48,726 bases of DNA, taken from positions 1 to 48,726 of the forward strand of contig NIVC01002816.1 of NCBI GenBank assembly GCA_002269645.1, given 5' to 3'. Origin of the DNA: Macrostomum lignano (Eukaryota). Made by a program: the position numbers and the translations under genes. Shown piece after piece: positions 9,547 through 43,780 of this stretch. Position 1 is the first letter of the stretch, and every line of letters starts with the position of its first letter. The notes under the pieces are model-generated. The model was given only the letters and a program-made list of their open reading frames with translations. It did no database searches and was not told the origin of the DNA.

Positions 9547-9576
9547 AATAAATTGTCGTACTTGTGCGTTAATAAA
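9547..9576 (+). promoter_or_regulatory. Candidate polyadenylation signals of NOL6
   Basis: AATAAA at 9547-9552 and 9571-9576, about 90-120 nt after the predicted stop. Confidence 0.5.
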
Positions 9577-19033: not shown

Positions 19034-19259
19034 CAGGGGTCAGCAAAGTTTTTTACCTTGAGCACCAGATCGAGAACCTAGCGCATAAATGTGGGTCAGA
19101 GGAGAGGAGAGAATAGTGAAGAGAGATGAGATATCGGAGAAAGGAGGGGCGAGAGGCTAAGCGAGGCGAAAAAAGAGGAGATTAGAGAAAAGACAGCTGA
19201 GAGATCAACCTAGAGAGGCTTTGTGGGCCGCATGTGACTTGCGGGCCTGTCGACCCCTG
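19034..19259. mobile_element. 226-bp hAT-type MITE with purine-rich core
   Basis: TIR CAGGGGTC...GACCCCTG. Perfect 8-bp TSD CTCTAGGA at 19026-19033 and 19260-19267. Confidence 0.88.
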
Positions 19260-19682
19260 CTCTAGGATCATCGATCGTGGAACTTTCGATCGATTTCGAT
19301 CGATCGTGGGGCAGCTCGTAAAAAGGTCTTAAATCTTAAATATTTTCACTGTTAGTGACAGTGAAACATTACAAATGTACGCAATAACTACCACAATGCT
19401 ACTTGTGTTACATATTTTCTTCAATCTTTAAGACAAAGTACTCCTAAAGACTAGATATCGGCTCTATCGCTCTATTCTAAGCATATATATTTGAAACACT
19501 TTATTGTAAATTTAATCAATTTCAGCATTTTCATAGCTCGTGCAGATTTATAGAGGTTTGACTATGAATAACTCGGCCTTTCTATTTTCCTTCTTTGACT
19601 AAACTCTAAACTTCATTTTGTAACGCTTCAACTTGGTGATCATTTATATTAAAAAGGTTTTATACTTATATCATTACAGTTG

Positions 19683-20603
19683 ATGTTAATAAATTTGCGC
19701 AATGGCTTGCTTCTTGTAATACGCTCGTATGTTACAACAGTTTCTGGTGTTGACCGCGCCCCCCGATTGCCTGGGGGAGGGGGGGTGACGGAGGTCTGTG
19801 ATGCAGCGGCCACCACGTTGAGTACCACTATCTGTTCCATCTTTTCCGTCTTACTGGCCTGCTGCCTGGGTACCTTTGACCATCGACCATCACAAATATA
19901 ATCCGTAATCCCTTTCGTAACAATCAAACTGTAAAAGCAAAAGCAGCGAGTCTCAATTCTCATTTCATCTCATCTTACTCTTGATGAACTGCCTAATGCT
20001 TCGTTTATTGTATTCTACTCGTACTAGTACTACTAATACAACCCGATAACATCACTAGCTAGTTTGCGAATCTTGTCACATTCACTACCAATTTCTTTGT
20101 TCGGGGTGCAAAACTGGTGACAGCGCGGCGCTCACGGCGGGTCCACCCCAACTGCCAGCCGACAATTGCCAGCCGACAACTGCCAGCCGACAATTGCCAG
20201 CCGAAAACTGCCAGCCGACAACTGCCAGCCGACAACTGCCAGCCGAGAAAACTGCCAGCCGGAAAACTGCCAGCCGAGAAAACTGCCAGCCGGAAAACTG
20301 CCAGCCGACAACTGCCAGTCGACAATTGCCAGCCGGAAAACTGCCAGCCGGACAAGTGCTAGCTGGAGTACCACTAATATTAATGCAGACAGCTGTAAAA
20401 AATATAGCTCGGACTACGTGTACGTCATCCGTGCCGAAAGCTACTGCCCCCAACCTGTCCAGGACGTCCTGCTCACCATGCAGGGCCTGTTCAGGGGGGG
20501 GGGGCAGGCTCAAACTCAGCGATATGTGGACTCACTGGACTGCCTGCTGTGCGACGCCAATGCGCTGGACACCGCCGGCGGGTGGACTTCGTTCTCTTGC
20601 TAG
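19683..20603 (+). CDS. Putative small Cys-containing orphan gene. Exons ~19683-19869 and 20389-20603.
   Basis: A phase-1 donor at 19870 and acceptor at 20388 join ...FSVLLACCL|DSCKKYSSDYVYVIRAESYCPQP...LDCLLCD...FSC* in frame. Exon 2 is GC-rich like other exons, and AATAAA lies near 20764. No family recognised. Confidence 0.3.
20149..20355. repeat. 14-16 bp tandem repeat (ACTGCCAGCCGACA / ACTGCCAGCCGGAAA)n, about 14 copies
   Basis: Tandem units read directly; they explain the overlapping repetitive ORFs at 20059-20643. Confidence 0.9.
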
Positions 20604-21042
20604 CCCTGCGGCGAGCCATTGGACACTGTCCCTATTTCTGTAACTCTTGGGCTAATGTAATTTATTGTTCATGTTGTTTCTATAGCTCGTATTAGAAGCT
20701 ATTCTACGGGGCTTTAGCTCGTACATCAGTGGCGTAACTCGTAATTCAGAGCTTGAAACTTAAAATAAACTGTCTACATTACACACTCAGACTTGTAATA
20801 GGTATAAAATTTGCACAGCAGAACTTTTCCTTTTAATAAAACTGAAGTGTGACTAACAGAATTTATCTGAATTCGATCGAATTTTGCTGACCTACAAAGC
20901 TTTGCTTGGCTTATTTGCTACATGAAATTTAAAGACTAACAAAACAACAGATCATGTTCATGTTCATGATCTTCTCATGTTTATGCAAAATAAAAAAGGA
21001 ACGAAACAATTATAACAGGAAAATAGTAAAATTTATTTCTGA

Positions 21043-21420
21043 TAGCTATATCAGCAAATGCGCTCGCTAACTGCGTAGGCAAAGTGTGCAGTAAAAATGC
21101 TGGTCAGTTAAAAGTAGGTATAGTATTACTATACTAAAAACTAGAAAAGCTGACAACTGCATTAATCATCACATAAAAGTAATAGTAAAAAGGAGTTATA
21201 TAATTTCGATCAACTTTGGAAACAATAGGGATTTTTCTAATCGTGTTTGTGATCCAGAAATCAGGACAATTAGTAGAATTTATTATTTTCGATAGATATA
21301 CTAGCAAATGCGCCCGCTAACTGCGTCGGCAAAGTGTGTAGTAAAATAAAAGCTGGCCAATGAAAAATAGGTAAAATTTTACTATAATAAAAACAGCCTA
21401 TTTTTGCAACTGCAATAATT
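21043..21420 (+). mobile_element. Two diverged direct copies of a Helitron/Helentron-like end sequence
   Basis: (T)AGCAAATGCGCYCGCTAACTGCGTMGGCAAAGTGTG begins ~120-bp copies near 21053 and 21303. The ACTAG plus GC hairpin start resembles rolling-circle non-autonomous elements (inference). Confidence 0.45.
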
Positions 21421-21544
21421 ATCGCATTTTAGAAGTAATTCAAAATTAATTAGCTTCGTACCGTCAAAAAAAACAAAAACGGCTGACAAGTAAATACACT
21501 AAACACAAACGCACCCGCTAATTGCACAGGCACTAAAACTGTCT

Positions 21545-22024
21545 GTAAACTACGATCAGCGCTCCAACTCCTCCACGGCCTCGCTCATCCGCTGAGGTGT
21601 ACCAGAGTGTCCAACCGGCACCCAGGTCCTCACAGTGAAGTCTGGGGTCGGCTCTGATAGACACCTCCTGTAGTGCGATGACATCACAGCTGAGGTCGAG
21701 CGCTAGCCTCGCCAGCAGCCCTCTCCGCCATGTGGCCTTGAGAGTGCGGCAGTTCAGCGTCCCGACCCGAAGCGTGCCCTCTGGTACGGCTGGGGCTCTG
21801 TGCTGGTGAGCCTCATGGTCCCCGGCGCCACCCGGAAGATCCAATTGGGCCAGCGCAGCAGCAGCTCGGCGGGCGGCGCCACGTTGCCGACCTCGCCAGT
21901 TTTGCTCGCGACGGCGTTCGACTCGCCGACGCGCGCTCCGCTGCCCTCGCTTGGTCCTGCCGCATTTGGCCGCCGCAGCAGTTAAGCGCGGCTCTCCGCT
22001 CTCACCACGAGGAGGTAGCGGCAT
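21545..22024 (-). mobile_element. Non-LTR retrotransposon (RTE-like) 5' fragment: N-terminal AP endonuclease
   Basis: LRVGTLNCRTL...DVIALQEV...GGVGALI are APE motifs I-III. The sequence breaks off at about 21550, with no RT domain. Confidence 0.85.
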
Positions 22025-23394
22025 TTATCTGCACCGTGGTGCAAATAAATTAAGACATGCAATAAATTGAGTCTTCGCAGTAAGAGACCGTCTTTACGGC
22101 CTCTTATTGCACGATGCATTATCAATAAGTTGGCCAAAAAATGCACGAATAAATTAAGTCTACTAAATACGAAAAACACAAGGTATTTCTGCAGAAAATA
22201 TTCACACACAGGTGCTCAACCATTCTAGTGTTCATATTGTCCTCTTAATCCGCTCGACATAGCTGTACTTGTTTCAACTTCAACTTCAGCTTCAAATTTC
22301 AACTTCGGTTTTTGCAAGAGTGCGTTCATTTCTGGCAGATTAGCCAAATCTAGCAGTCAGCCACATTAAATGCCTATGGCAGAAACTGCAAACAGCCAAA
22401 TATAAGCCAAGTCATATAAGCCATAAGCCAAAAGCCATACAGCCAAGGAGACAATATAAAGCCAAAAGCTGAGCCCGTTTATCACCCTGAATTCTGCCGT
22501 CAAGCAATTTTGCCCAGCCCGAAACTCCCATTTTCTATTTAAATTAAAGTTAAATTAAAAAAAAACATAGAAAATGACTTTCAAAAAATTATTTCAGCTC
22601 TGTTTTATTTGGAAGTATTCAATAGTATCCCGTAAAATCTTTAAGCCTATGTTTTATATGAGATGAACGTGCCTTTTGAGGGAGCAATTTGTATAAATCT
22701 CCAGGGCCGAAAAAGAATTTTTATCTACTACATGAAGCTTCGTCTTGCAGTAGGAGAAAGTATCCTAGTCTTGCAAGTGGACTTAGTTAACGATTTAATG
22801 ATTCAATTTTGGCCACAGACACATTGCTTGGCTTTGAACTGAGAAAGGGCTTTTTGCTGAAAAAGATTTTTGCTGATAGCTCAATTTTATCTATACATGA
22901 CATAAATTAAGTGGATAGCTTAGTTATTCATTAAAAAGCTTGTCTAATAAACTCTCTTCAGCATACAATTTGAATTCAAGATGTCGGGATCTCGCCACTT
23001 TGCTGAAGCAGCCCGCAAAATTGTTTACAAATCCGACCGCGGCGCCAAAGCCAGAGAAGAGCGATGGAAAGCGCGTTGCCTGATGGAGCAGCAGCAGAAA
23101 AAGCAGGAACAGGAGGAGCAAGAAAAGCAGCAGCAAGAGCAGCTCAAGAATCTTGCTTTAGAAATGGGATTTCTATAGGATAGAGAAGACCAGAAGAAGC
23201 CAGATGACACAGAAAAGAAGCCTCAGATTCGGGACCAGAATGAAATGGCCTGCGCCTGTGGAGAACGATGTCGATTCTCCGTTGTTGTGGCAAATTTGTC
23301 CAGGTAAATTTGGTCTCAGCTTTTGTTTGTATATTTAGATTATCAATGTCACTGTCTATACGCGAGACAAACCGCATTTTTACATAAAAAGGTT

Positions 23395-23540
23395 TGCGAC
23401 AATTGACTACCAATCTATAAATCTAGCCACAACAATAAGCCTAACTCTAACATTGAGCAAAACCTAATCTCAAACCTGACATAAATCCTAACCCTAACCT
23501 TAACCCAAACCCTGAACTAAACCTAAACCGTCGCCAATAG
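23395..23540. repeat. Degenerate telomere-like (CCTAAC/CCCTAA) tract, related to the elements at 9232 and 10391
   Basis: CCTAACCCTAACCTTAACCCAAACCC preceded by GACAATTGACTAC. Confidence 0.6.
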
Positions 23541-23629
23541 AATAACAGTATCCTATACATGAACCTTGCGTGTTAGAGAACAAGAAATCGCAGCCTGCAC
23601 ATGCAGTGCAGTGTGTGCTGTTGCGTTCT

Positions 23630-24196
23630 CATCCGATTGTCGCGTAAGTGCAGGTCGGCAGACCGGGATGGCACCATCCTTGAGTCGGATGCTCAGTTGA
23701 TGCAAGGCTTCCTGCAGATTGATGTTGGAAGTCTGCAGCAGTGTGCGCCTGAGTTGCTCAGAGTGACTGCCGGCAACGACCTGATCTCGGATGAGCGAGT
23801 CATGCAGATCAGAAAATTCGCAGCTTTCCGCCGTCTTGTAGAGCCGACTGACCCATGCATCAATGCTCTGATTCGGCTGTTGAACACAATTTCTGAACTC
23901 ATACCGTGAAAAACCACGCAGTTTCGACAGGTAAAGTAGTCTTTGAATGCCTTGATAAGTTGGTCGATGGTCTCTCCTGTAATGGTCATTTGCTTGTAGA
24001 GTTCGGCCAGTTCTTTGCCGCCCGTGTAGAGCAGGACTTGTCTTTGCTGGGCCGTGTCCCTGACGCCCGAAGCGGGAATAAAGCGCAGGAACCACGAAGA
24101 CCAATTCTTCAACCGTGATGCGAGCGTGTGCGATTCTCTGAGGGGAGGGGAGGGCAGTGCGTTTATTAGATAGGGCACCCAGTCCAGAAGCAGCAC
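23630..24196 (-). mobile_element. Decayed Gypsy/Ty3 gag, frameshifted and fused by deletion to a pre-RT linker fragment
   Basis: W..WF.RF..ASG...LLYTGG, RYEFRNCVQQPNQSIDAWVSRL..CEF..L.DSLIRDQVVAG are gag motifs. They are followed directly by LSIRLKDGAIPV, which resembles the linker before RT. Confidence 0.85.
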
Positions 24197-25465: not shown

Positions 25466-27946
25466 TCGCTCCCTTCTGGTCCTTGTTAGGACCTAAAAAT
25501 TTTGTATGCAAATAACACTAATGAATCATTCTTTATTCAACACTCCACCCTACAAAACGTTAAGAGTGCTGTGGATGGCTTACGAAGAGTACGAGCTGCT
25601 TCACGCATGCTACACCGATCTGTTCGCCGATCCGAAGCGTCGCAACTGCGAGGCCAGGGTGAAGTCTTACTGGCGCACGTTCGTGCTCAACGCTAAACCG
25701 TCGGAGCCGCACAATCATGCCGAACGTCTGTGGCGTCTGACTAAATTGGAACGGGAGGAACACCTGGCTGAGAAGGCGCGACTGCCCGTTGATCCGGTTT
25801 GGCCCATAGTTTTTTAATTCTATGGGGATTCAAATCATATCAAATCCACGAGCTTTGATAAAACCTAATGACTGCAATTACAATATTAGCTGTGAACGAT
25901 TTAAATAATTTACTTGATTACACAATTAGTCGAATGAGCCAAATATCTGGTGCTTACTATGTTTAGAGTAGTACATCATCATTTAGTCTTGAGCTGCTTC
26001 TCGTATGCATGCATGGAAAGTACGAGAAGAAACGAATGTGTTTGATTGTACTTTGATTCGCATGTGATCTAAATGAGGGAACAATTTTTTGAAGACCCGC
26101 AATTGCAAAATACAGTTTATTATAGTCCTCTAAGGTTCAATAAATGTAACATTTCTTTAAAATTTTTGTGTTACCATCGACAAAACCCACCAAAAGTACG
26201 TCCAGATAATGACACAAAAATGCAGATGATTGTTTGCCAGTCTCAGGTGGAATTTCTAAAATAAGTAGGATGATGACAAACCTTTAAATCAAAATAGGGC
26301 AAAACACATGCTTTATTTTAAATTCGAATCTTCAGAAGCTGAGGCATTATCAACTTAGTAGAAAAAAAACTATCTAATTCCTATCTGGCAAATTTTGCAG
26401 CGGAGACTGGCTTCCAGAGAAAATCCATCGATTTTCAAGTGCAGGGCCCTGCTGCTTTACCTGTGTATGTATGCTTTATTCATGATCGTGTCGTGAATAT
26501 GCGTGGTCGTTGCTGAAAGAATCATTACGGACTGGATTTAACCAATTTTGCAGCTGTACTTCTCAGGATTCCACCTTCCCATTTACTGTCAATCAGGTTG
26601 CCCCGCTGCGTCGCCCGATATTGGCCACATTGCTGGACCCATTCGGCTACGTGAAATGCCGCTGCGTTCACTGCGCCTACCTGGACGCCGTCATGGACTA
26701 TCGGGTGGCGCTGTTTGGCTTACTGACCGAGTACTGCGAGCTTTTTGAGGACTACGCCAGGCTGGTGTGGTCCTCTAGTGCTGAGGTGCTACTAAGCGGG
26801 TTTGCTTTTTATATAAATGTGTATTTTAGTGCACTAAAATATATCGATTTAACGTTTCGATTCGATTCGATTCCACCAACCATCCTGTCATAAATTGCTC
26901 ATGGACAACTATAATAGAAGAAGTCTAAACTCGCAAATTTCATGATTTTTACTGTATTTCTTTCTGCAAAATGAATTTGCGAGATACGAATTTTTCAAAG
27001 TAAGCTTTGCAATTAATTAATTTTTTATAAAACTCTTTTGCTTCTATCTGGGAACAAACTTTTTTTAAACGAGTTTCCCCCACTGAATGTTGTTTATGGT
27101 TCATCTAGAATGCACAGTAAAATGGTGAATAAAAATATCATTGCTTGGTGGGTGGAACTTTTGACTGTTGTTGGATATATTATTAAGATTTTTCCAGTTG
27201 GATCATGGATCAGTTCAACGAAGACGACCGCGACTGCAAAAGGATTGGAACTAATGAACAAATTAATTTATCGGTAGTGCAGTCAGTCGAGCTACTGTTT
27301 GGTGAACAACTAAAGCTTGAGGGATATTGCTAGTGTTATCGCTGACCGCTGTGTTGCTAGGGAATTTTTATGGAAAACGTGGACCAAAGTTTTCTTCATA
27401 AGCAGCAAAACTTTCTCCCTTTGTACTAACACGCTACGATACTATGGGGTTGTTTTCTGATTTTAACACAGTATTGTTGTTTATAAAGTTTCAAGTAAAT
27501 GCACAGTCAAGTATAAAACATTAAATTCGATCGTATATGATATTAGTCTAAGACTTTCATGTTTTCACGAGTGCAAAGCTCAAACCAAAAATTCATTATC
27601 GTGCGTACGTGCAAAATTGCATCAACTTTAGTGACCCAAAGAAGCCCGGAGAAGCAGATAGATGTAGGAGTATGAGAGAAAGAAAGAAAAACAGAGTGCA
27701 CAAATTTAGTCCCTCTGTCACTATTCTATGCAAAGCGCCAAAAGGTACGCTGCCTGCTGTACATACATGTACAGCCAGTTGTACGCACGCAAGCGAACAG
27801 AAGATAGCATAGAGGCAGAATATACTTCACGCACTCGCTGACAAAAAGCGTTGCTAAGATTTCAAATTAAGGCGAGAGAAGCGTTATACGAGACTGACTA
27901 TAAGTATTTTACAAGATCTGCAGCAAAATATCTCAATTCGTATTTA

Positions 27947-29293
27947 ATGTTGAAGGCAAATGAGATGAAAGACAAAGACGATGTCTCCGATGAGTCTCCA
28001 GTGGCTGGGGAGGCACCCACCGCGCAGATATTCAGTATCGATGGAGCAGTGCTGGATGCAGCGGAAGCCGCTCTTTCACAGGCGAGATCGCGGGTAAGAG
28101 AAATTCGATGTCTTGCATCATCATCATCGATCTCGCCAAATCAGCAGAGACTTCTGCTGAACTGGACTGAGCATTTAAAAAGTCACTTGACGGATGGCCT
28201 GCGAGATTCAGTTGGAGCTGCAGCTCTGTCAGATAGCAAAATGCCTGAATCGAAACTGGTGGCGCGAGTCTCTCTGGTCCAGTCAGCAGTTGACGGCTTC
28301 GTTGCCATATCAGCCTGTCACGTAGAATGCACTGAGGGCTACGAAAGCGATGCTGGAGGAAGCATTTTTGAGACTAGTGCATCAACGACCCGCATTGAGC
28401 CCCGGCCCTTGCCAGGCTCCTGTGTGGCCGTCTTGATGACTCCTAGGGAGTCCCGTCGACGAAGTGTTTGCACTGGTAGGATTGCTTTCTGCCCACACCC
28501 GGCCCAACATAAGTACTCGAAGCGTTTTCTGCTGATGTCTCACACTGGAGGTAGCGAACTGAACGATCGGCCTCTCCGAATAACAGCTTGTCCGGCTGCT
28601 CCGCAACTCTTCATGCTGACAGCTACTCAAAGACGGCTTTGTGTCAGACAGTGTGGCTTAGATGGTGCCTGCCTGCAGTCGGCAGAGCTCAAAGATTTTT
28701 TTCACGGCATTGAGCAACCAAACTGACCGGACCCATCCAGTGACGAAGCCTCAGAACTTGACAAAGATCGATGCTACGAAGAAGATGCTCGAATAGAAGC
28801 AGATTCGAAATATATTGTAGTGTTCCACGGCGGGTCCAAATCATCTACTACCAGGCACGTTCCTCAGGTGGTTGTTCTGCTGGATCGAACCAGCCTGCGA
28901 GTTTTGCAACGATTGCAGCTACCGCAGGAGTCGTGGGCTCTCCATGCCACGCCAAGATTACTTTGGCTTCGTCATGGGGGTCAGCTAAAGCTGGTGAGCC
29001 AAACAAGTCGCCGAGTTGGACACGAGTGGGCCGAGGCAGATTGCTTCGGGCCCGGTGGGCTGTTCTACGCGGCAGACGCGACTGAAGTGGTCGCCAGAAG
29101 CCAGTGCCGGGACAGCGTGTGGCTTGCGGTAGCAAGCGAGAACAGCGTTCGATTGTTCGACAAACAGATGCGCCCTGTGTCTCGAATCTCGTTGCGTTAT
29201 CCAACAGCCGTTTGCTGCTGTGGAACTGGTGATGGTCGGATTCTGGCAGTTTGCGATGCGGCCGCTCATGAATTGCTGCTGTTTCGATTGTAA
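27947..29293 (+). CDS. Intronless ORF: helical/coiled-coil N-terminus plus NHL/beta-propeller-like C-terminus, interrupted by one in-frame TGA (28724-28726)
   Basis: ORF-track entries 27851-28726 and 28820-29293 share a frame, and the sequence between them is open except for that TGA. The C-terminal YPTAVCC..DGRILAVCDAAAHELLLF resembles an NHL blade. Confidence 0.6.
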
Positions 29294-30256: not shown

Positions 30257-33200
30257 TTAAGTGGACGAGCAGGTGAAATACGGTCTGAGTATGATTTTAA
30301 AAACAACAACTTTTGAGAGGCTGTTCAGCAGGCAGTAGCGCTTTGAGCCGGGCGAGCAGGGCTGCACCGTGGGCTTGCGAAGTCGCTTCACCACCGGCCT
30401 GTAGGTCTTTCGGTAGCTCAGCTCCGGAGTGCAGTTTCTGGAGAAGTCACGATTGTTGTGATTGTGTCAAGACAAAGTTTAGCCTCACGGGTCCGCTGAA
30501 GCTTAATAGATTTCACATCTAACTCAAGCCATTTCTCATTTTCCATTCAATTTTTTATTTAACTTACCTCCACTTCACCCAACTCAGCAATTATTTTGTC
30601 TAGACTAATGCAACACTCTCCACTGTAATATATGCAGCACCAATACACCCGAATCTCCTTCATTCTACTCCACCCACTCCAATTCAATCCAGTTCAGTCC
30701 GCTCCTCTCTCTCCTTTCCATTCTCTTCCCATCCCTCCACTCCAATCCACTCTTCTCCCCTCCATTCCACTTCACTTCTCTCTACTCCACCGTTTCCCTT
30801 TCCTACCCCTTCACTCCAATAATCCAGTCCAGTCCACTCTTTTTATTTAATTCCATTTCACTCCACTCCACTCCCCTCCCCTCTCCTCCAATCCTTCCCC
30901 TCTCCTCCAATCCTTCCCCTCTCCTCCAATCCTCTCCCCTCTCCTCCAATCCTTCCCCTCTCCTCCAATCCTTCCCCTCTCCTCCAATCCTCTCCCCTCT
31001 CCTCCAATCCTTCCCCTCTCCTCCAATCCTCTCCCCTCTCCTCCAATCCTTCCCCTCTCCTCCAATCCTCTCCCCTCTCCTCCAATCCTTCTTCTCTCCT
31101 CCAATCCTTCCCCTCTCCTCCAATTCTCTCCCCTCTCCTCCAGTCCTTCCCCTCTCCTCCAATCCTTCCCCTCTCCTCCAATCCTTCCCCTCTACTCCAA
31201 TCCTTCCCCTCTCCTCCAATCCTCCCCCTTTCCTCCACTCTATTCCCCTCAATTCAATTCCACTCCGCACCAATCCGCACCAATTCACTTCACTCCATTC
31301 CAGCCCACATAAGCTCCATCCGGTCGCCACTCACCGTCGTTGACATCTGGCTCCGTAAAAGCCAACCCGACACCTGCAGAGACCGTCGGATTCGATACAG
31401 CGCCCACCGTTCAAGCAGAGGCTGCGGTGGCAGCGAACCCGATGACAGAACCGACCGCGATAGCCAGGTGGGCAGGAGCATTTGCCGGGGCGAATGCAGG
31501 TGCCGCCGTTCACGCAGGGTGGGTAGCAGTCCGCTGAAGCGGGTGAAAGTGGCATGTGAACTGCAGTCTGAAAAAATTCTATTTTTACATTCGTTTTCTG
31601 ATCTAAATTTAGTAGTGATCATTAGAAACAGTTCTACAATGTCTCATTAATAAAAAATAAATAAATCCTATTTAATACATGCTATATTAGGCATTCGACG
31701 CCCGCAATTGGAATGTAAGCAGAGTTGGATGCGGTAAGTACGCAACACAGAAGCCGCTTGTGTCACCCCTCAAAGCAGCCAACGTATGCGAGGGATAAAC
31801 TATGAAGAGTTCAAGTTCTATGGTAGTTCTCTGACGCACGCACACGAGACATACGAGAGCTCGGTAGAAATGCAGATAGAGCTGCGACTGAGCAAATTCT
31901 ACACAGCTCTCGTATGCGTCGCGCAATGACAGCGGTAAAGACGCTCAATACTAACTAGGCATTTTCCATGAATGAGGATCTTTCAAATTCGACTTTAAGA
32001 TGCAAAAAGTTCATCTAGAAAGTAGCCAGAGGCGGACCAACCTGTCTGGCACTGGGTGCCCGAAAATCCGGCAGCGCATGCACACAGGTTTGGGCCGACG
32101 CAAGCTCCACCGTTTCGGCACTGCGGTCGGCACAACGGCTTCCGACATCGACGCCCGGACCAACCCATCGGACAGCGACAGTCACCGCCAGTGCGCGGGT
32201 CGCAGACTCCGCCGTTGCGGCAAACAGTTGCGCTTTTGCGCCTACGGCGTCCCCTACCGTACGCCCGACGCCGGCAGTCGAATTTCCATCGACGCCTCGG
32301 AGGAGAAGCCGTCGGTAATGGAAGTTTCGGCTGCGTTGGCACCGGCTGCTCTGACAGGACCGTCTGGCAGCGGTCACCGGTGTACGAAGTGGGGCAGATG
32401 CAGCGAGATTTGTAGCAGAATCCGCCGTTGAGACAGGAGCTGCAACCGGCGGCAGATCCGGCGCTGTGGTCAGGATTGCATAGCGGCAGGCTGGGACAGG
32501 GTCGGGACTCGACTGGCGGGCGGGACCCGGCAGGATGGCAGCTGTCGGCTGGTGAGTTGCCACGGCACAAAGAGTGGCGGCTGCGAATGCCTTCGCCGCA
32601 GGTGGCGCTGCAGGAGCTCCAGGCGGTCCAGTAGGTTGGAGGCGGAGTCTGTTTAACGAGACAGTTCAGGCTCAATTATTTCGCTTCGCTTTGGGCACTA
32701 CGCAAAAAACAAGACGACATTCGACAGGCAGCCAGCAAGGAGATCAAAATTTATGCCCATTTTTCTCATCCCTGAGCATCCGCTCATGCCCACAAAGGCG
32801 CACGCAGGTCACACAACGCTCACACTGAGTGTACAGTGGCCCTGAAATTCTCATCTTTAGGCATGTGAACTCTGTCCCTTGGGGGTTGATTAGCAAGATA
32901 GGTGATCGTTAGTTTGATTTTTTCAAGAGACTGCTGGAAAGTCGAAAGCACTGTGTGTTCTTCAAACGAATTTATCACGGGGAGCATTATAAACGTTCCA
33001 ACTACACTTCAACGGGACGTGAACTTCACTTTCATATGGCACTTTGGGCAGGTCCTATTCTCGAAAGCGATCTTTGGTCTCGCAGTCCTCATTGTTTCGC
33101 AGGCCAATTTATGGTCTGCTAATCTAAACTGTGACATAGGGTGCACTTGAATTCTGGATTGGAAATTTCCAGGAGATGATAGTACCGTTTACGTACGTAC

Positions 33201-36200
33201 GCAGTCATACGCACAGGCACACTCACACAGGAGTGTACAGCGGCCCTAACTTTATTTTATCCTTAGGTATGTACACTTCACTGTGCCTTGATGGTTGGCC
33301 CTCAAGGGCGGTATTAGCACGAGCAGACCCAAGCCCCAAATTAATGTGACTGAACATGAAACCCAGCCCAGGCCGCTAGCACATAGGAGCGCCGCCGCGT
33401 TAGACCGCAGAGCTGCGCCCCCCCCCCCGTTATTAACGTTTATTCTGCATTAGAAATTGTCATTGCAACGAGACAGCTGATTGTTAAGTTAAATGAAATA
33501 TCGAAGCTGTAAATAAATGCAGGCATACATGTACTCCTTTCGTGTCCCTGCAAATGCATATTGGAACTTCAATTATAATATTTTTCTCTGTCAAAACGCA
33601 AGAATTCAAATCGATGACCTACCACTTTTTGTTCCTCGGAACAGTCTGTTGCCTCGGACCATGGCACAAAATTCGCACTTAGAAGAGCCTGCAGTTATTT
33701 TGCTTATTTGTTATTTTGTATTCAACTCTCATTAGTATATGCAAACCAGTTATCGTTTAAAACGTACCTTTCTAGGTGTCAAAATGAACTTCGAACCAGC
33801 ACCGGGAACTGGCACGCTACCAGAGGACAGGCATTCGATTGAGAATTCAGCAAAGCTGCCTTCGCTTTCATTTGCAATTATTCGCAAATAAATTGCAACT
33901 GATGGAGCCGTTGAAATATCTCTCCACATGCTCGAGGCAGACGTCATGGTGAGGACTGAGACGTGATCTTCAGCAACAGTTTCCATGGCGACTCGAATAC
34001 CAGACAAAATCGGAGATATCATCAATGCCAGAGCCGTCTCCTTGGAGAATTTTTCGATGCGTTGATTATCGATTGGAATGGCAATTGACTCATTGCTTGT
34101 ATTTTTAGCATTCAGCTGTTCACCGAGAACTTCTGTCTTAACTGGTCGCATGGCTGAAAATCCAGAATTTTAAACCTTCACTTTTCTATTGCTGCCATTG
34201 ACAAATTTAATTAAGCTGTCAAAATAAAAATTAAAGTTAATATGCTACGAATTTTATATGCAGTAGAACAGATTGTTTCTTCAATTCAGTTCTACATTTT
34301 TGTCTCATTTTCAGTTTTGAGTATAGGAATGCAGTGGTCCGACTTTGACTCTGAAAGGAACCACTACGAGCGTACAGCAAACACAACAACCAGCAGGTTA
34401 CCTATAAAACTTTTTTCTACAGGCAAATCCAACGAAAAGGTTGAGTTTGGTTTTTCTGTTTAAAATAAGACAATATGGACGTCCTGAAGGCCAAATGTCT
34501 TTGGCTCTTAATAAATTAAAAATCTGTTTCAGCCCATGGAGGCATGGGTGCTTGATATCTTGGTCTTCAAGGCGGTTTTTTATTTGAATTTTGGAATTTA
34601 ATTTTTTAATGTTGACTGCCCAATTTTTGTGGGAATACCGAAAGTTGAAAGAAAATTATCAGAATTTTAATTTTTTAGAATTTTGCGTGGAGCTAGACTT
34701 TTGTCCTTTGAACATGTATTAAATATTACAATATATTGTATTGTATTTGTAACTATGCGAGCTATATTATATACTCTTTCTTTCCAACAGCTGCGAGCAT
34801 AGGCTGGAAACCCAATACTGTAGAGCTTTGGGTCGGCAAACTTTTTAACCTCAAGGACCAGATCGAAAACCCAGAGCATGACTGTTGGCCAGACAGAGAA
34901 GGAATAAAGAAGAGAGAGGAGAGAAAGGAGAAAGGAGAGGCGAGAGAATAAATGAGAGGAGACGAGACGAGACGAGATATTAAATAGAAGAGAATATAGG
35001 AAAGAAAGGAGAGAAGATTAGAGAAGAGAGATGAGAGAAAAGGAGGACTGAGTACTGAAGAGAGAAGAGGAGCGGAGAGAAGAGGAGAGAGGAAAGAAGA
35101 ATAGCAGGGGAGAGAGAAGAAAAGCGAAAAGAGGCGACTTTACTGGAAAGCTGAGATTCTGAGATCTGAGATCTGAGATGAGCACGGATAGAGACACAAG
35201 CCTTATGATGGCAGCGGATTGTTATCCGTGCAGTTTCAAAGGACCAGAGACGCTTTGCCAGCCGCATGTGGCCCAAGGGCCGGAGTTTGAAGACCCCTGC
35301 TGTAGAATAATGAAATTTTCTGTTTAGAGAAACATGGTCCGGAAATTCCCTCCGACGAACTCCATATTAGATTCCCATATCAATGGCAACAAAGGTTACC
35401 TGTTAGAGGTTTTAAAAACAAGGTTTGCATTTAGAATGTCTTTACTGTAAAACATTTTCTCTTTATTCCTGTAATCGGTGAGTCCAAACGGAGCGGAATT
35501 CTCACCTTCGCAAGGCCACCTATTGCACTGACGAGTCTGTTTGGCGTCCCCGTAGTCGCAAGGCGGTCCGGCGCAATTTCTGACTCTCTGTCTGATGCCA
35601 GCGAGGCCGCAGCTGCCGCTGCAGGCCGTCCAACTTGACCAGCTGAACCAGCCTGAATTGTGGGGGAGAAAATTCCCATGTTTTTTTCTTACTGAGCTCA
35701 TTAATGAAGGGTAAAATGTCGCTCAGCAGTCTATAATGAGTTATAGTTAACATATAGTCTTTGCTTCAACTGTGCAATAAAGCAGTGATCTCGGAATCGC
35801 TCACCCAAGGCCGTCGCAGCTCTTGCCAAATTCGATTCTGTCAACTGGGCTGTCGCGGCAGATGGTCTGGCATAAAAAGCCATGAGCCTGGAGCCCGACT
35901 TTGACAGGAAAAATATCAACCAGTCATCTTGAAAAACTTCGCTCAAGCAGCTAACTGGATCTCCGTATTCGTCAATTACCACTGTGCGATCATTGGTATC
36001 ATCAAAGGCGCTTCGGTTGCTAAGGGGCAACAATCCATTACCCTTCAGCACCTCGAGCACTTGAATTTCGGCTGAGTAGCTTCTCCTTGAGCCACTGCCT
36101 GAGCCACTCGCGGTTGTATTGAGCACATGTCCAGTGAGCACAATCGGAGAAGACTCTGCCAAATCTTCGATACTTTTTGAGACGCCGCTGCCTCTGCTAC

Positions 36201-36300
36201 CGCTGCCGCTCATCGCCAAATTTAGGTAGCATGCCCTGCTTTCCCATACTGCCAGCAGAAGCAGCAACAACAACAACAACCGAACACTAAAAGCTTTCAT
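30257..36300 (-). CDS. Secreted NtA (agrin N-terminal) + 2xTSP1 + 5xEGF protein. Exons 36300-35805, 35652-35506, 32648-32042, 31560-31335, 30437-30257.
   Basis: Signal peptide MKAFSVRLLLLLLLLLAVWESRA. NtA-like IVLTGHV...YSAEIQVLEVLKG...VVIDEYGDPVSC...IFFL. TSP1 WFSWSSWTACSGSCG and YWTAWSSCSATCGEG. Five CxNGGxC EGF units. Exon 2 ends in phase 1 but exon 3 starts in phase 0, so a small exon or indel is unresolved. Confidence 0.75.
30860..31240. repeat. Polypyrimidine/polypurine 19-20-bp minisatellite (CCTCTCCTCCAATCCTTCC)n, about 19 copies, flanked by degenerate TCCAC/TTCAA pentamers
   Basis: Periods of 19 and 20 measured directly. Lies in the last intron of the NtA gene. Confidence 0.92.
32755..32890 (-). 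mobile_element. SINE family B, 3' fragment
   Basis: Reverse complement contains GGGCCACTGTACACTCAGTGTGAG and TGCTCAGG, as in 8073-8290. Confidence 0.55.
33195..33420 (-). mobile_element. SINE family B copy
   Basis: Reverse complement has the head GCAGCTCTGCGGTCTAACGCG, plus CACATTAATTTGGGGC and GGGCCGCTGTACAC. Confidence 0.62.
34826..35299. mobile_element. Second copy of the hAT MITE seen at 19034, with an expanded GA-rich core
   Basis: Shared ends GGTCGGCAAAC..TTAACC..ACCAGATCGA and GCCGCATGTG..GGGCC..GACCCCTG. TSD CTGTAGAG/CTGTAGAA (7 of 8 match). Confidence 0.8.
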
Positions 36301-37070
36301 TTCGATCGAAATTTTGGAAGCCAAGCTTTCTGCTGCTGCACTTGGCTGCTGTAAGAAGAGGCTGTTTTGTTCTCTTCTTCTCAGGCTTAAGAAGCGGTCT
36401 TTATCCTCTGCTTGGTGGCTTTCGCGTCTATAAATTAATGAGGAGAAATTTCTTTCAAAAGTGGAGACGTCGTAAGTTGATTAGCTAAGCCCATCAACTT
36501 CTGGGCCAATGGTCTCTGCGCGTCCTTTCCTTTTTCTGCGGCCCCTTGTTCGTCTGCGCATTGCTTGGGCTTATTATTATACTTTCTCCGTCTGACTTCT
36601 TCGACAGATAAAGATAGAAATGGCAGGACTGTAACGCCTGAGTGGCTGCCCCTCTTCTCTCCCTCTCCGATCTTCTCTCAGCTTTTCAGCCATTCAGAGG
36701 CGCTCCGGGCGCAACTCATGTCTGAGGCTATTGCAAAAAGTTTATGGCTATGTGATTTTATAATTTAGAGTAATAGATCTCTTCGAAGACTGCCGACTCG
36801 AGCGAGTTAATGCGAGGGTTTAGGAGAATTGAGCATGGACAGTTCAATAGGAGAGATAAGATTATATGGATTGCTTATAAATTTATTTGTCTTTACGAGT
36901 GTCAATATTATTATTTGTAGCACAATGTCCTTTACGATTCCTTGATGTCCTAAACTCTCAACTTTCACTCTTACACATGGCATCCTAGCTTGTAGTCGCC
37001 TCAAATATTTTTAGTCTGCAGCACAGCATTTCCACTTGACTCGCACTCAGTTGATACCTAATTTAACCGA

Positions 37071-37405
37071 GTAATGATGCAAGTTTTCCGATCGGGGTCC
37101 AGTATTCTAAAAGCGGTGTTCTGGCCCCGTCAGTATAGTAATGATGCAAGTTTTCCGATCGGGGTCCTGCATTCTAATAGCGGTGTTCTGGCCCCGTCAG
37201 TATAGTAATGATGCAAGTTTTCCGATCGGGGTCCTGCATTCTAATAGCGGTGTTCTGGCCCCGTCAGTATAGTAATGATGCAAGTTTTCCGATCGGGGTC
37301 CTGCATTCTAATAGCGGTGTTCTGGCCCCGTCAGTATAGTAATGATGCAAGTTTTCCGATCGGGGTCCTGCATTCTAATAGCGGTGTTTTGACCCCGTCT
37401 GTAGT
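37071..37405. repeat. Five tandem copies of a 67-bp unit with an internal GGGGTC/GGCCCC inverted motif
   Basis: GTAATGATGC starts at 37071, 37138, 37205, 37272 and 37339. Confidence 0.95.
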
Positions 37406-39737: not shown

Positions 39738-42700
39738 ATGTCAGAAATCGAAAGCAGTTTCAGAAGCGCCGGACAAATTCGGTCGTTGCTGTGCTTTCTG
39801 TTAGTCAGCATCTCAGCAGGCATCGCCTACAACGCATCCTACGTGTTTTTATCGAGCATGACGACAACTCTGGAGCGGCGCTTTGGTTTCGATTCAGAGG
39901 ACACGGGGCGAATCATAGTGGCGAATGATATTGGCTTCGCTGCAACTGTGACGCTAGTTAGTTTCTATGGCAACCGAGGTCACAGGCCTCGCATTTTGGG
40001 CCTGGGCGCAGTTGTTATGGGTCTGTCCACGGCTGCCTACGCACTTCCATATTTTATCTACGGCCCGAAGTACTCGAACGCCGAGATTGCACGCTATTTG
40101 ACTCTCACGGATCAACAGCTCGGCTGGAAGAACGACAGCGAGCAGCTGAAAGCATTAGCTGCTGAAAACAACGACCTATTGTGCCGTGGAAAAATCCTCG
40201 ATTTGAACTCAACAGGCATGTTCAACAAATCCTCAGAGTCAAACAAGTATCCGAGGTTGGGTTCAACAACATCGGAATCATCCGCGACCAATCAAGTTGA
40301 AGCCCGCAAAGTAGTCTTTGCCATCTTTATGATTGTCGGGATCGTTCAGGGCGCCGCTTCTGCCCCCTCTTGGTCAGTGCTATTCACAATGGTCGAGGAC
40401 TCAGCCACCCCGTCTCGGTCGCCAATCTACATCGGCCTGGTCATCACTGCTCGATCAATATCACCAATGCTGGGCTATTACTTGATCGGGCAGTTTTTAG
40501 CACTGCACGAATCATTTGGCGAATCTGGTCTGCGTGAATCCGACAGCATGTGGATTGGCAACTGGTGGCTGGGGTTTCTCAGTCTCGGCCTGCTTACCAG
40601 CCTGCTTGGCTTTCCCATGCTGCTGTTTCCCCGCCAACTTGAAGACGCGTTCTGCTGCTCGGAAAGACCGGATGAGCAGAAAGACGATCCCTGTGATGCT
40701 GAAGACGATCCGGACGCCTCTCATCCTGAGACTCCGCTAAACGAGGCAAATATAGTGCGCCGTATGAGTCGCCACAGGTCGTGCGAATCGCAGCCGCGCG
40801 GGGCCGGGAATTGCGCAAAATTCCTTCACAGTCTTCGCGACTTGTCACTCGCCGTGAAGCGCACTATGACCAATGCGATCCTCATGCTGGTCATGCTGTC
40901 CTGCGTGGTCAGTTTGCTCGGTTCAGGTCTCGAAGTGTTGTTTATTGTCAAGTACTACGAGAACTACTTTAACGTATTGCCCTCGGCAGCAGGACAGTAC
41001 GTTGGCATCACCTATGCGCTGCCAACCGCACTGGCAACACTAGCTGGAGGCTACTTGGTGTCGCGCTTGCAGCTTGACGTGGTTGGAATGATGCGACTCA
41101 TCTGTGGTATCTTTCTGGTGACCACCGTACTGAATTCGCCAGCATTCTTTCTGGACTGTCCCTCCGAAAGGATCAATACGGACGTGTAAGATTACATATT
41201 TTCATCTCGATTATTTGTGCTATCGATTTGTCAATGCATTTCAATGCCATCGTTCAGAAAACACCGAACAAGATGTGCACTCAGATATATTCACATGCTA
41301 AAATATCAAGGTATTGTGCTGGATGTATCCATCCAAAGTTACCAATGCATCGCTGTAGATGTGTAACGTAATCACGCTAGATTTTTCAATCATGCAGGGT
41401 ACTGGTTCCCACTACCTGTACACGTAAGAATGATCCCAGGTACGTTAAAGGAAAAGTTAGTGAAATCATCGAGTCTAGAACTTTGATCCTATGGCTCATT
41501 TCATATACCCATGTGTATTTATCAATAGAAAAAATTAACCGCTTCGTTGATTCGTACATCGGCATTCATTTTTGCCAAAAAGTGCAAAACGGCTTTATTT
41601 CCATAAAGCTCGTAAGACCGATAACCGCCGTCACAGCCTCACAGAAACAATGGACAGCAACGTCAGTAGCGTCTCCGACTGCGCTGCAAAGTGCAGATGC
41701 GATGCCACTCTCTTGAACAATCTGCCAGTGTGCGGAGCTGATGGAAACTTATACATGTCACCGTGTCATGCTGGGTGTACAGGGACAATGTCTGTAGCAG
41801 TTGCTGAGAACGGGACACACCAGGTACAAATTCTTTTGTTATTATCGAAGATCTGTTTCTGCTAATCAATTGCTTTTATTAAGTAATTACTCATTATAAC
41901 TTATTTCCGATGCCAGCCTACGGAGATGGTGTTTAGCAACTGCAACTGTTTAGAACAGGCATTTGTAAACTACAGTTTAACGGACTCCGCTGAACAAGGC
42001 CTTGTCAGCAGCACTGCACTGGCAGGCAGTTGCTACGGTGTATGCGACATGGTCTATGCCTTCTCCGTGCTGAAATTCATCGCACATTTTGTTGACGGCC
42101 TGTCGTATGTGTCATGGTTCTTACTAGTGATGAGGTGCGCATGTTGCAAAAATTTGATGCTGTGGCATTTATTAGGCAATAATCAAAAGAGGAACCGTAC
42201 GATTTTTAGAGTGACAGACTCAAAGGACGACGAGGCCATGGGTGTCGGGATTATCTCGCTGTTCTTCAGTCTTGCCGGTAACATATTAGTAATACTTAAT
42301 TGCATTGCTGAGATATTTTCAACTAAACTATAGGAATAGAAGGCTCCATACATACAACCCTATCGATATTTTTTTACTTTATGGATAAACTTTTGTGAAA
42401 AAAGCACAGTACGAGGGTAATGCAAAAACTCATAAAAAGCTGTCCTAAGCTTTATTTTCTTCTTATTTTCTTAAGTCTCCATGACAAACATCAATGTCCC
42501 ATGCCGTACGCTAGTTATTCAACGCTTCGAAATCATTATTCAAGGCTATTAAACATACATTCATGAGACAATGTTTCTGTGCATATAGTTTTGGGGGTAG
42601 ACAATGATTAATTCTTCACGAGTGGCGAAGCCATATACCAAAACCATATGCACAACCTACCATTGTTTCTCAATGGTCCGTGCATCATTGGTAGATTGTC

Positions 42701-43780
42701 TATATGGTTTTGGAGGTATAGACAATGAATATTTTTTCACAAATGACTAAAACTAAGCAATAACATGCACCCCAGATGCATGTTAATGAGTAGTGAAATG
42801 CTTGAACCCATCGGGTACTTGAAAATTTTTGAGACTTACACCATATTGTGCAAGTCTTCCATATTGAGACTTGCCTATGGCTATGGCTTAGAGGGTCCCA
42901 GGAATTAATGTCCCTAAATGTCGAGTGGAACCCACTGGATTCGCCAGCGCAATTGATGTCTGGGCGCATCATTGATTGTCAGAGTTACAACCAACTGGTT
43001 AGAAATTTCGCATTCATTTTTCTTAACAATCGCGCTCACAAACAAAGTTTTGTCCTGTACGATGTGACAACAGCAGGTTGTTGTGTCGATCGCTACTCTA
43101 TGCGTGTGCGTAATTGTGTGTACACCTCTTAGCTATCGATCGCAGTACAATATACGAGCGTATGATACATAAGTTAGAGCGTGGAGAGTTTGAGAGCTTG
43201 AGAGTTTCGCCTACAAACTTGCAGACTGACTGGCTTATTCATTCTACAACACAGGTGACTTGCCTAAGCACAAGTACCCTTTAACAAGGACCCGCTAGAA
43301 CCTAGAACCGCAAATATTCTGGCCCGTCCTCAGCCCCATTCTGTGTCTAAAATCGCCTAGGCTTCCGATGAAGAACAAGAATCAAATTGAATTGAACAAA
43401 AGCACTTGAAAGCACTTGATGACCTTTCAGCCTCCATCATGGGCGGCTTCTGCGGTCGTATTTATGAATCCGCGTGCCTGGTAGCCACCAGCGGCTCAGC
43501 TGGAGAACGCAACTGCCTGCTGTACGACAGGACGCGACTTCGGATTCTGTTTAACGGCATCCCCATGCTGGCCAGGCTGCCTTACTTCGCCCTGCTGCTG
43601 GCCGCCTATCTGCTAGTTAAACGCCGCTTCGGCAACACGACCGGAAATTGTGCTGAGCAGCCGAGTGAAAATGCAGAGGAAAATTGTCAACTGGGTGACG
43701 TCAGCTCCAAATTGCCTGACAACAAATCTGAGCAGGATGACGTTGAAACCGCTGCTGTAGCTGGTGCAGAAGAAATGTAG
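39738..43780 (+). CDS. Organic anion transporting polypeptide (OATP/SLCO family), about 756 aa. Exons 39738-41185, 41637-41823, 41917-42134, 42210-42277, 43431-43780.
   Basis: LERRFGF..EDTG, VSFYGNRGHRPRILG, family signature DSMWIGNWWLGFL, Kazal-like loop CAAKCRC...PVCGADGNLYMSPCHAGC and final C..YD. All junctions are phase-consistent. Confidence 0.92.

Follow-up and report, generated by a model that had tools for sequence, protein, structure and literature searches.

Gene structure

The window is the whole of a 48,726-nt stretch of Macrostomum lignano DNA (contig NIVC01002816.1, assembly GCA_002269645.1). On its minus strand, positions 36300 to 30257 carry a predicted six-exon coding model of 2016 nt (671 aa), with GT-AG at all junctions and a reading frame that runs without interruption across the 2016 nt. 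Its features are listed here, a slash marking a splice or cleavage site.

Exon 1: 36300–35805, minus strand; start ATG at 36300–36298, signal peptide (aa 1–23) and NtA-like domain (aa 24–166)
Exon 2: 35652–35506, minus strand; TSP1 repeat 1 (aa 167–214); phase 1 to 1; donor GAAG/GTGAGA
Exon 3 (central): 34153–33768, minus strand; 386 nt, aa 215–343; phase 1 to 0
Exon 4: 32648–32042, minus strand; TSP1 repeat 2 (aa 344–400), EGF1, Pro-rich/polybasic segment, EGF2, EGF3; phase 0 to 1
Polybasic segment within exon 4: 32297–32232, minus strand; RRRWKFDCRRRAYGRGRRRRKS, aa 461–482
Exon 5: 31533–31335, minus strand; EGF4 and EGF5; phase 1 to 2; donor ACG/GTGAGT
Exon 6 (tentative): 30437–30257, minus strand; basic tail (aa 612–671), stop TAA at 30259–30257

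Exon 1 ends with ...ATALG in phase 1 (donor G/GTGAGC). The original prediction had joined exon 35652–35506 directly to exon 32648–32042, a junction that we do not find tenable: with exon 2 ending in phase 1 and acceptor 32648 in phase 0, the direct splice is out of frame. Exon 34153–33768, which that prediction had overlooked, restores the frame between the two TSP1 exons. It is bounded by the acceptor attctggattttcAG/CC (ttttcAG/) and the donor AAG/GTACGT, and it has the top splice score among 143 phase-compatible candidates, a score matched by only 0.45% of block shuffles; we regard it as quite probably genuine. Codon-usage scoring mostly followed GC content and did not separate the reading frames. 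A candidate phase 0–0 exon is also visible at 33128–33030; its splice scores are below those of the accepted exons, and it was left out of the model.

At the 3′ end, the Cys-containing basic tail described earlier exists as an ORF (NCTPELSYRK...) that ends with the TAA at 30259–30257, and the exon that would attach it is putative. Its acceptor (cttctccAG/A) has a compatible phase, the patch is GC-rich (0.57), and an ATTAAA poly(A)-type hexamer starts at 30245, directly after the stop. The tail has four cysteines (aa 612–671) and a net charge of +13 over aa 610–671; Pfam and PDB gave no match for it, and the coral proteins described below have no counterpart. We lean toward accepting the tail exon. 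If the exon-5 donor is not used, translation meets an immediate TGA at 31334–31332 (...ARCQRR and stop), and with the last intron retained the predicted product has 612 aa instead of 671.

Domain composition of the predicted protein

The model is predicted to encode one secreted, cysteine-rich multidomain protein in which an NtA domain is joined with TSP1 and EGF repeats, as the original prediction had it. The expected signal peptide is present at the start ATG at 36300 and is of the classic type (MKAFSVRLLLLLLLLLAVWESRA/C). It is followed by a domain that matches Pfam NtA (PF03146) at 38.1 bits, well above the gathering cut-off of 25.1 (E = 1.5e-9); failure of this domain to match NtA had been named as a possible refutation. 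The match spans model positions 4–102 of 115 and stops before helix H3. When the NtA exon was compared with PDB using phmmer, the only significant matches were to agrin NtA (E = 7e-4 to 2e-3), and a profile of the family N-termini likewise matched agrin NtA only, with E = 1.1e-13. The AlphaFold2 model of the domain is of low confidence (pLDDT 59.5) and has the secondary-structure order helix, five strands, helix. With this low-confidence model, Foldseek returned non-significant OB-fold, TIMP-2/3, and NTR matches (E ≥ 0.12), and agrin was absent from the 50 best listed. TIMP-like protease inhibition through the N-terminal Cys of NtA was considered and not adopted, its support being a predicted SRA/C cleavage and these non-significant TIMP matches.

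Both predicted TSP1 repeats are recognized by Pfam TSP_1, at 28.5 and 33.9 bits (cut-off 21.6), and carry the motifs WFSWSSW and WTAW; repeat 1 has six cysteines and repeat 2 contains an O-fucose consensus, CSATCGEG. Between the two repeats, exon 34153–33768 encodes 129 aa with one Cys. This region has no recognizable domain and no Pfam or PDB similarity, and its AlphaFold2 model (pLDDT 34) is unusable.

The five six-Cys CxNGGxC EGF units that had been claimed are all there. Exon 4 scores 37.9 bits for Pfam EGF_2 and exon 5 scores 42.2 bits for EGF_2 and 39.2 bits for EGF; EGF4 has the O-fucose consensus CVNGGTC. Their assignment to the WIF1/Shifted type holds as well, since the top solved-structure match is WIF1 (PDB 2YGQ, E = 1.4e-32). 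Every TSP1 and EGF unit retains six cysteines, and Pfam scans of all exons found NtA, TSP_1, and EGF-type domains only. The model has 49 cysteines in total, an odd number that suggests either a free Cys or one small exon still missing.

A polybasic R-x-R-R stretch had been placed between EGF1 and EGF2. The stretch is present (PPRRRWKFDCRRRAYGRGRRRRKS, aa 459–482), but it is not a simple interdomain linker: its second half (RRRAYGRGRRRRKSATV) is a 17-residue insertion into EGF2, between its Cys1 and Cys2. The resulting EGF2 loop, also given as RRRAYGRGRRRRKS, has a net charge of +12, and the segment contains two RX[KR]R motifs (aa 475–480).

Homologs in scleractinian corals

The original prediction named no protein of this layout, and our literature and database search, papers included, found no named protein with an NtA–TSP1–EGF arrangement. 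The layout is not unique, however: Scleractinian corals encode the same order in unnamed RefSeq proteins. Those of Montipora capricornis (XP_068740421.1; P0119, 683 aa) and Orbicella faveolata (XP_020611493.1; P0133, 689 aa), both annotated "uncharacterized protein," are collinear with the model, as is a further coral protein, P0005. Additional relatives are M. foliosa XP_068716541.1 and a Desmophyllum pertusum fragment, KAJ7384157.1, labeled "Spondin-1." Collinearity is seen in full-length alignment and in BLASTP HSPs, with E-values of 1e-36 in the C-terminal half and 2e-10 in the N-terminal one; the exon 4 region has 35% identity to coral across 290 aa (E = 1e-36). This is an uncharacterized conserved family rather than a one-off fusion. 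Membership of a known conserved family had also been named as a possible refutation; the architecture is conserved in corals, but the family is neither known nor named.

The coral proteins consist of a signal peptide, NtA, TSP1, a TSPN-like domain, TSP1, and seven EGFs, a layout that is found on a single spliced mRNA (Logan contig SRR22097830_11762). Much of the exon structure is common to the two. The intron after "ALG" (phase 1) has an identical position and phase in the coral gene, and exon 2 of the window gene agrees with coral exon 2 in boundaries and phases, a phase 1 intron following the first TSP1 in both. The central exon runs from phase 1 to 0 in both, inter-EGF introns are in phase 1 in both, and the intron before exon 5 matches the coral position and phase. 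The proteins are also of similar length, and NtA passes into TSP1 through a conserved "ALGW" junction.

There are differences as well. NtA identity between window and coral is 22%–29%, and the acceptor of the second TSP1 exon is in phase 0 in the window and in phase 1 in coral. The corals have seven EGFs and neither the polybasic insert nor the basic tail, whereas the window gene has five EGFs, the loop, and the tail; at the polybasic position, coral has a regular EGF instead. Since the coral homologs are without it, the polybasic insert is a lineage-specific feature and not part of a core mechanism.

The central region differs too. In coral it is a TSPN/LamG-like domain of ∼235 aa, whose profile matches collagen IX NC4 (2UUR) at E = 0.0075 and Laminin_G_3 weakly; the window counterpart is the unrelated-looking 129-aa exon. 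Comparison of the two by hhalign gave a probability of 0.1%, and Smith-Waterman alignment with shuffles gave z-scores of −1.0 and +1.2. Whether the central exon is related to the TSPN-like domain of coral was examined by tblastn, hhalign, Smith-Waterman, Pfam, PDB, and AlphaFold2, with results that were all negative or uninformative, and we do not propose such a relationship; the exon corresponds to the coral exon in position and phase only. A tblastn match of 34498–34415 to the coral central domain was rejected as chance (E = 7, with a stop inside).

Searches for other relatives returned little. When 1.84 billion representatives were searched exhaustively by phmmer with the NtA exon as query, two spurious repeat-protein matches were the only result, and those representatives thus include nothing closely related to the window protein. 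A word-indexed search with the signal peptide–NtA–TSP1 segment found nothing, the query probably having been swamped by poly-Leu and GS words. A profile search with the window and coral N-termini recovered only coral-type exon fragments, none named, and in a scan of JGI metagenomes, too, no relative turned up. An Rfam scan and an exact look-up of the OATP ORF gave no match. On the coral alignments and shared introns, the window gene is very probably a divergent member of an unnamed family that is also present in scleractinian corals.

Alternative interpretations

The original prediction went further than domain order. It envisaged a direct splice from 35652–35506 to 32648–32042 and a laminin-anchored pro-protein from which furin frees or exposes the EGF module, and several of its ingredients are sound: There are RX[KR]R motifs at aa 475–480, the NtA domain is real, and the EGFs are WIF1-like. 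The splice, however, shifts the frame from phase 1 into 0, the coral homologs are without the polybasic insert, and the cut site would lie between Cys1 and Cys2 of EGF2. Canonical EGF disulfides connect C1–C3, C2–C4, and C5–C6. A furin cut in the C1–C2 loop would therefore leave the chains disulfide-linked through C1–C3, with no release of an EGF. Given the position of the polybasic run in this loop and its absence from corals, furin release is unlikely; a heparan-sulfate-binding role of the run fits better, and the scheme as a whole we consider highly improbable.

The locus might also comprise two neighboring genes, an NtA–TSP1 gene (36300 to ∼35400) and a separate TSP1–EGF gene (32648–30257), as the ∼2.9 kb between the halves and the possible extension of the exon-2 ORF to a stop at ∼35398 would allow. 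This is very improbable: in the coral homologs both halves are on one mRNA, there is a bridging exon whose phases match exactly and whose splice sites are strong, and inspection of the gap revealed no signal-peptide exon that could belong to a second gene. Scarcely better is the prospect of an isoform that bypasses the central exon, with exon 2 extended to a donor CAG/GTAACC at ∼35400 (phase 2) and joined to an acceptor at 32672 (phase 2), inserting ...GENSAPFGLTDYRNKEKMFYSKDILNANLVFKTSNSLNCLVKQ... between the TSP1 repeats. The two phases fit each other and the donor agrees well with the consensus, but acceptor 32672 is preceded by a purine-rich tract, and upstream of the alternative donor there is the strong one at 35506, placed at a domain boundary that is conserved in coral. 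Finally, the gene could be a decaying or nonfunctional copy of a coral-type gene, one from which the TSPN-like domain and two EGFs have disappeared and in which low-complexity inserts have arisen. An unrecognizable central region, the odd Cys count, inserts that are GS-rich or polybasic, and five EGFs versus seven in corals are what such a copy might display. Against this, the ORF is intact in all exons, the TSP1 and EGF units keep their six cysteines, and the splice sites are all canonical, so that decay appears improbable. That there is a single gene and that it is homologous to the coral family is a joint claim in which we have high confidence.

Comparison with known proteins

The N-terminal domain is homologous to that of agrin (PDB 1JB3/1PXU/3I70; full length 8S9P), with conservation of the Cys pair and of the VVI..(F/Y)GDP..C core motif. 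The NtA of 1JB3 is an OB-fold β-barrel flanked by helices, a fold with which the order of helix, five strands, and helix in the low-confidence model is consistent. The resemblance ends there: By Pfam scans of all exons, the window protein is without the follistatin/Kazal, laminin-EGF, SEA, and LamG domains of agrin. Helix H3 of agrin NtA holds the laminin epitope (Leu142 and Val149), through which the laminin γ1 coiled coil is bound with high affinity (PMC3439447). In the window protein the predicted C-terminal helix of NtA has ∼13 residues (TESNLARAATAL) and adjoins TSP1 directly, and the laminin-binding residues could not be equated with confidence. Since the helix that carries agrin's laminin epitope is short here and abuts TSP1, the laminin binding that analogy with agrin might suggest for this NtA-like domain is not to be assumed and appears doubtful.

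WIF1 and Drosophila Shifted share five tandem WIF1-type CxNGGxC EGF repeats with the window protein, for which WIF1 EGF I–V is the closest structure. They differ in the remainder: no exon of the window gene has a Pfam match to the WIF domain (PF02019), and NtA and TSP1 are found instead, whereas the true WIF1 and Shifted matches in our search do carry PF02019. The EGF domains of WIF1 and Shifted bind glypican HSPGs (PMC3285576). VWDE, Delta-like proteins, teneurins, and HHIP have a similar EGF subtype, but the likeness is limited to the EGF repeats, and the window protein is without VWD, DSL/MNNL, teneurin, and HHIP β-propeller domains.

Thrombospondin-1, NELL (TSPN plus TSR and/or EGF), and R-spondins (TSR plus a basic tail) are secreted matricellular proteins with TSR/EGF modules and heparin-binding basic regions. 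Unlike these, the window protein has no VWC domain or furin-like repeats, and we know of no NtA domain in any of them. Thrombospondin type-3 calcium-binding repeats and the C-terminal lectin-like domain had no Pfam match in the window exons.

Proposed function

We favor, with moderate confidence, a reading of the locus as one minus-strand gene of six coding exons that would encode a secreted matrix or matricellular protein of ∼671 aa, a divergent member of the coral family. Its predicted order is signal peptide, agrin-type NtA (putative OB-fold), TSP1, the 129-aa region, TSP1, five WIF1-type EGFs, and the basic Cys tail. After secretion, the protein would be held in the matrix or at cell surfaces, where its WIF1-type EGFs and the strongly basic C-terminal half, with charges of +12 in the EGF2 loop and +13 in the tail, may bind HSPGs, e.g., glypicans. 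The NtA-like domain may add binding to a matrix partner, in the manner of agrin NtA with the laminin coiled coil, and the TSP1 and EGF modules could then display extracellular ligands or sequester them. Within EGF2, the polybasic run would be a lineage-specific glycosaminoglycan-binding (or protease-sensitive) loop, not a site of EGF release. By analogy with WIF1 and Shifted, function as an HSPG-binding matrix modulator is a possibility that we advance tentatively.

On a broader reading, speculative and rather unlikely, the window gene and its coral relatives would define an ancient, hitherto undescribed family whose secreted members modulate morphogens or the matrix. Agrin-type NtA (a TIMP-like OB-fold) would then act either as an anchor in the basement membrane or as a head that binds a protease or ligand, and would position the HSPG-binding, WIF1-type EGFs. 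Were this so, the family would be a WIF-domain-independent counterpart of WIF1/Shifted, and NtA would not be exclusive to agrin.

In agrin, NtA is the laminin-anchoring module, and the papers found present it as a mark of agrin. Among the paralogs agrin, perlecan, and pikachurin, it is present in agrin alone (PMC3927612), and it is listed among the Pfam domains confined to ECM proteins in the human proteome (PMC4224354). In the proteins described here, NtA heads a different conserved chain, made up of TSP1 and WIF1-type EGFs, and does so in two or more distant animal lineages, which would add a non-agrin use of NtA and an unnamed family of matrix proteins. The building blocks are all ordinary extracellular modules. 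The gene also shows in practice how overlooking one domain-less exon alters a gene model.

Exon structure of the NtA-TSP1-EGF gene

All features of the NtA-TSP1-EGF gene lie on the minus strand, in a window whose composition (GC-rich exons and AT-richer introns with minisatellites) is eukaryotic and metazoan-like. The original prediction joined exon 2, which carries the first TSP1 repeat (TSP1-1), directly to the acceptor at 32648. This junction fails: the 496 nt of exon 1 end in phase 1, which the 147-nt exon 2 (phase 1-1) preserves, and the acceptor needs phase 0 for the TSP1 frame. A 35506-32648 splice would therefore break the reading frame. Within the supposed 2.9-kb intron we found a 386-nt open segment (E2b), bordered by the acceptor attctggattttcAG/CC and the donor AAG/GTACGT, with phases exactly 1 to 0. 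By generic splice-site scoring, E2b comes out ahead of all other phase-compatible open AG..GT segments of this intron (143 candidates in total); equally well-scoring phase-compatible exons of ≥300 nt were present in only 0.45% of 2000 block-shuffled gaps. The predicted six-exon coding sequence including E2b is uninterrupted (2016 nt, 671 aa), with GT-AG at all junctions.

Exons of the window gene
36300-35805, minus: exon 1, signal peptide and NtA
35652-35506, minus: exon 2, TSP1-1
34153-33768, minus: E2b, bridging exon, 129 aa
32648-32042, minus: second TSP1 repeat (TSP1-2) and EGF1-3
31533-31335, minus: exon 5, EGF4-5
30437-30257, minus: last exon, tail ORF, tentative

The intron between exon 2 and E2b contains a tract (34800-35250) of strong strand skew (plus-strand GC skew reaching 0.83) that is rich in pyrimidines on the strand of the gene. 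The tract yields Ser/Leu/Phe-rich pseudo-ORFs; one of these, with a poor donor, is the second-best phase-compatible candidate.

Inclusion of the last exon is less certain. The exon 5 donor (ACG/GTGAGT) is strong, the acceptor at 30437 is phase-compatible, and the tail patch is GC-rich (0.57) with ATTAAA after its stop; on the other hand, retention of the last intron would bring an immediate translation stop (...ARCQRR), and the corals described below have no such tail. Inside this intron lies a purine/pyrimidine-asymmetric minisatellite (30861-31250; ∼19 copies of the 19-nt unit TCCCCTCTCCTCCAATCCT, 92% match) that makes long spurious minus-strand ORFs in several frames.

Coral homologs

An exhaustive search among 1.84 billion representatives returned no close relatives of the NtA exon, and a search with the TSP1-EGF half returned many EGF proteins, including VWDE, WIF1/Shifted, and Delta-like. 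One coral-type hit (P0005, 647 aa) has TSP1, EGFs, and a sub-threshold NtA match of 22.7 bits. Clustered with it are 683-aa RefSeq entries from Montipora capricornis (XP_068740421) and M. foliosa (XP_068716541); a sister cluster includes the 689-aa XP_020611493 of Orbicella faveolata, along with a Desmophyllum fragment mislabeled "Spondin-1." The window model is collinear with the coral proteins from the signal peptide through the last EGF (BLASTP: 35% identity over 290 aa, E = 1e-36, for TSP1-2 and the EGFs; 26% over 239 aa, E = 2e-10, for NtA and TSP1-1), and the NtA-TSP1 junction "...ALGW.SWSSW" is kept. The coral protein comes from a single spliced mRNA: It is an uninterrupted ORF in one 3.4-kb Logan contig, while the genomic exons span >30 kb. 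The original prediction knew of no named protein with this layout. That part stands, since full-text literature searches found no paper describing the NtA, TSP1, and EGF combination, and family entries in public databases read only "uncharacterized protein"; the layout itself, however, already exists in corals.

We mapped the Montipora-type protein on a coral genomic contig (ERZ25067889 ctg49034; exons at 6470-20207), a mapping that lacks the exon between 4 and 6 (about aa 396-425).

Exons of the coral gene
Exon 1: ends ...ALG, phase 1 end, TTAG/GTACGT
Exon 2: TSP1-1, ends DCY, phase 1-1, TATG/GTAAGA
Exon 3: central domain, aa 203-370, phase 1 to 0, GAG/GTAAGA
Exon 4: small exon, phase 0-0
Exon 6: TSP1-2, phase 1-1
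Later exons: single EGF each, phase 1-1

The first two introns have identical positions and phases in window and coral, E2b has the phases of coral exon 3, and the window EGF3/EGF4 intron matches the coral inter-EGF introns in position and phase. These shared introns support common descent of the two genes and, on gene structure, the view that E2b corresponds in position to the coral central exon. The genes also differ: The window gene lacks the coral 0-0 exon(s), its TSP1-2 acceptor is phase 0 whereas the coral TSP1-2 exon is 1-1, and one window exon holds TSP1-2 and EGF1-3, which occupy separate exons in coral. Two coral RefSeq isoforms, X1 and X2, are distinguished by 12 aa (GTPILVDHPEST) directly before TSP1-2, which suggests an alternative splice site in the coral homolog.

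The likeness of E2b to the coral central exon does not extend to detectable sequence similarity. The coral central domain is TSPN/LamG-like: Its profile matches collagen IX NC4 (2UUR, E = 0.0075) and, weakly, the thrombospondin-1 N-domain, and the domain matches Laminin_G_3 weakly. The 129 aa of E2b have no Pfam match and, by sequence search, no PDB match; compared with the coral domain, they give an hhalign probability of 0.1% and Smith-Waterman z of −1.0 and +1.2. The AlphaFold2 model of the region has pLDDT 34. The single Cys in E2b brings the full model to 49. The odd total points to an unpaired Cys, a bond to another molecule, or a small exon that the model still lacks; three more Cys would come from a weak phase 0-0 candidate (33128-33030, minus strand).

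The NtA domain

The ORF from the ATG at 36300 begins with a textbook signal peptide (MKAFSVRLLLLLLLLLAVWESRA/C), followed by the NtA domain called in the original prediction (PF03146, 38.1 bits against a curated cut-off of 25.1). The only PDB matches of the NtA exon below 0.01 (phmmer) are agrin NtA (8S9P, 3I70, 1PXU, 1JB3; E = 7e-4 to 2e-3), with the N-terminal Cys, the VVI..(F/Y)GDP..C core, and the IFF strand aligned. When 21 coral-type N-terminal exons are combined with that of the window into a profile, agrin NtA again supplies the sole PDB matches (E = 1.1e-13), which secures the assignment for the whole family. At the level of sequence, homology to NtA is solid. The AlphaFold2 model has the right element order at low confidence, and a Foldseek search with it gave OB-fold, TIMP, and NTR matches, none of them significant.

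In agrin, the laminin-binding epitope (Leu142 and Val149) is in helix H3 (PMC3439447). The Pfam match of the window domain stops before H3, and its predicted terminal helix (∼13 residues) leads straight into TSP1; laminin binding can only be hypothesized. In the literature that the searches returned, NtA occurs in agrin but in none of its paralogs (PMC3927612), and in the human proteome it is listed as a Pfam domain exclusive to ECM proteins (PMC4224354). We rate the window protein as a modular TSR/EGF matricellular protein, with NtA used outside agrin.

TSP1 repeats and the EGF array

TSP1-1 has six Cys and WFSWSSW (28.5 bits against a cut-off of 21.6), and TSP1-2 has WTAW and the O-fucose consensus CSATCGEG (33.9 bits). 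With three EGF units beside TSP1-2 and two in exon 31533-31335, the predicted feature list (signal peptide, NtA, two TSP1, five EGF, polybasic run, and tail ORF) is borne out as quoted. Among solved structures, WIF1 (2YGQ, E = 1.4e-32) is closest to the EGF array, ahead of Delta-like 1, teneurins, and HHIP. The window protein has no WIF domain.

A cysteine count makes the proposed furin release of an EGF module unlikely. Since Cys1 of EGF2 comes from "FDC," the part of the polybasic run with the sequence RRRAYGRGRRRRKSATV inserts 17 residues into the loop between Cys1 and Cys2 of EGF2, a loop of 3-4 residues in the other units; coral homologs have a regular EGF there. Canonical EGF disulfides would retain the fragments, so a cut at RRRR/K would free no module. 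The C-terminal half is strongly basic (net charge +12 for EGF2, +13 for the tail, and +2 to +5 for each other EGF), and the EGF domains of WIF1 and Shifted bind glypican HSPGs (PMC3285576). On domain homology, HSPG or heparin binding would therefore be the most economical functional inference.

Neighboring sequence

Other features of the window
∼2100-9066, plus: Nrap/NOL6-like nucleolar protein gene (Nrap_D5, Nrap_D6 at 5826-6410, 8245-9066)
2744-3086 and 6465-7175: minisatellites within that gene span, periods 31 and 22
10563-12569, plus: Canopy/MSAP-like gene, DUF3456 (PF11938), first ORF 10563-10862
10899-12065: 1.2-kb minisatellite after that ORF, 31-nt unit, ∼38 copies
∼14300-18768, plus: leishmanolysin-like gene (peptidase M8, invadolysin-type), PF01457 in exon ORFs 16570-16968 and 17731-18768
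20149-20363: 14/42-nt tandem repeat, overlapping ORFs on both strands
21533-22024, minus: weak APE-type endonuclease fragment
23553-24196, minus: ORFs without assignment
27851-29293, plus: long ORFs of 291 and 157 aa, no Pfam match
37070-37403: tandem repeat, five copies of a 67-nt unit, 97% identity
38877-39006: (ACT)43 microsatellite upstream of the OATP gene
39738-43780, plus: OATP/SLCO organic-anion-transporter gene, first ORF 483 aa, PF03137 E = 2.4e-79

The ORFs at 27851-29293 probably belong to a gene converging on the 3′ end of the window gene, and 20059-24196 is repeat and retroelement debris. A later exon of the OATP gene encodes a Kazal_2 domain, typical of OATPs. The 67-nt repeats sit ∼0.8 kb upstream of the ATG of the window gene, within the intergenic region between it and the divergently oriented OATP gene.
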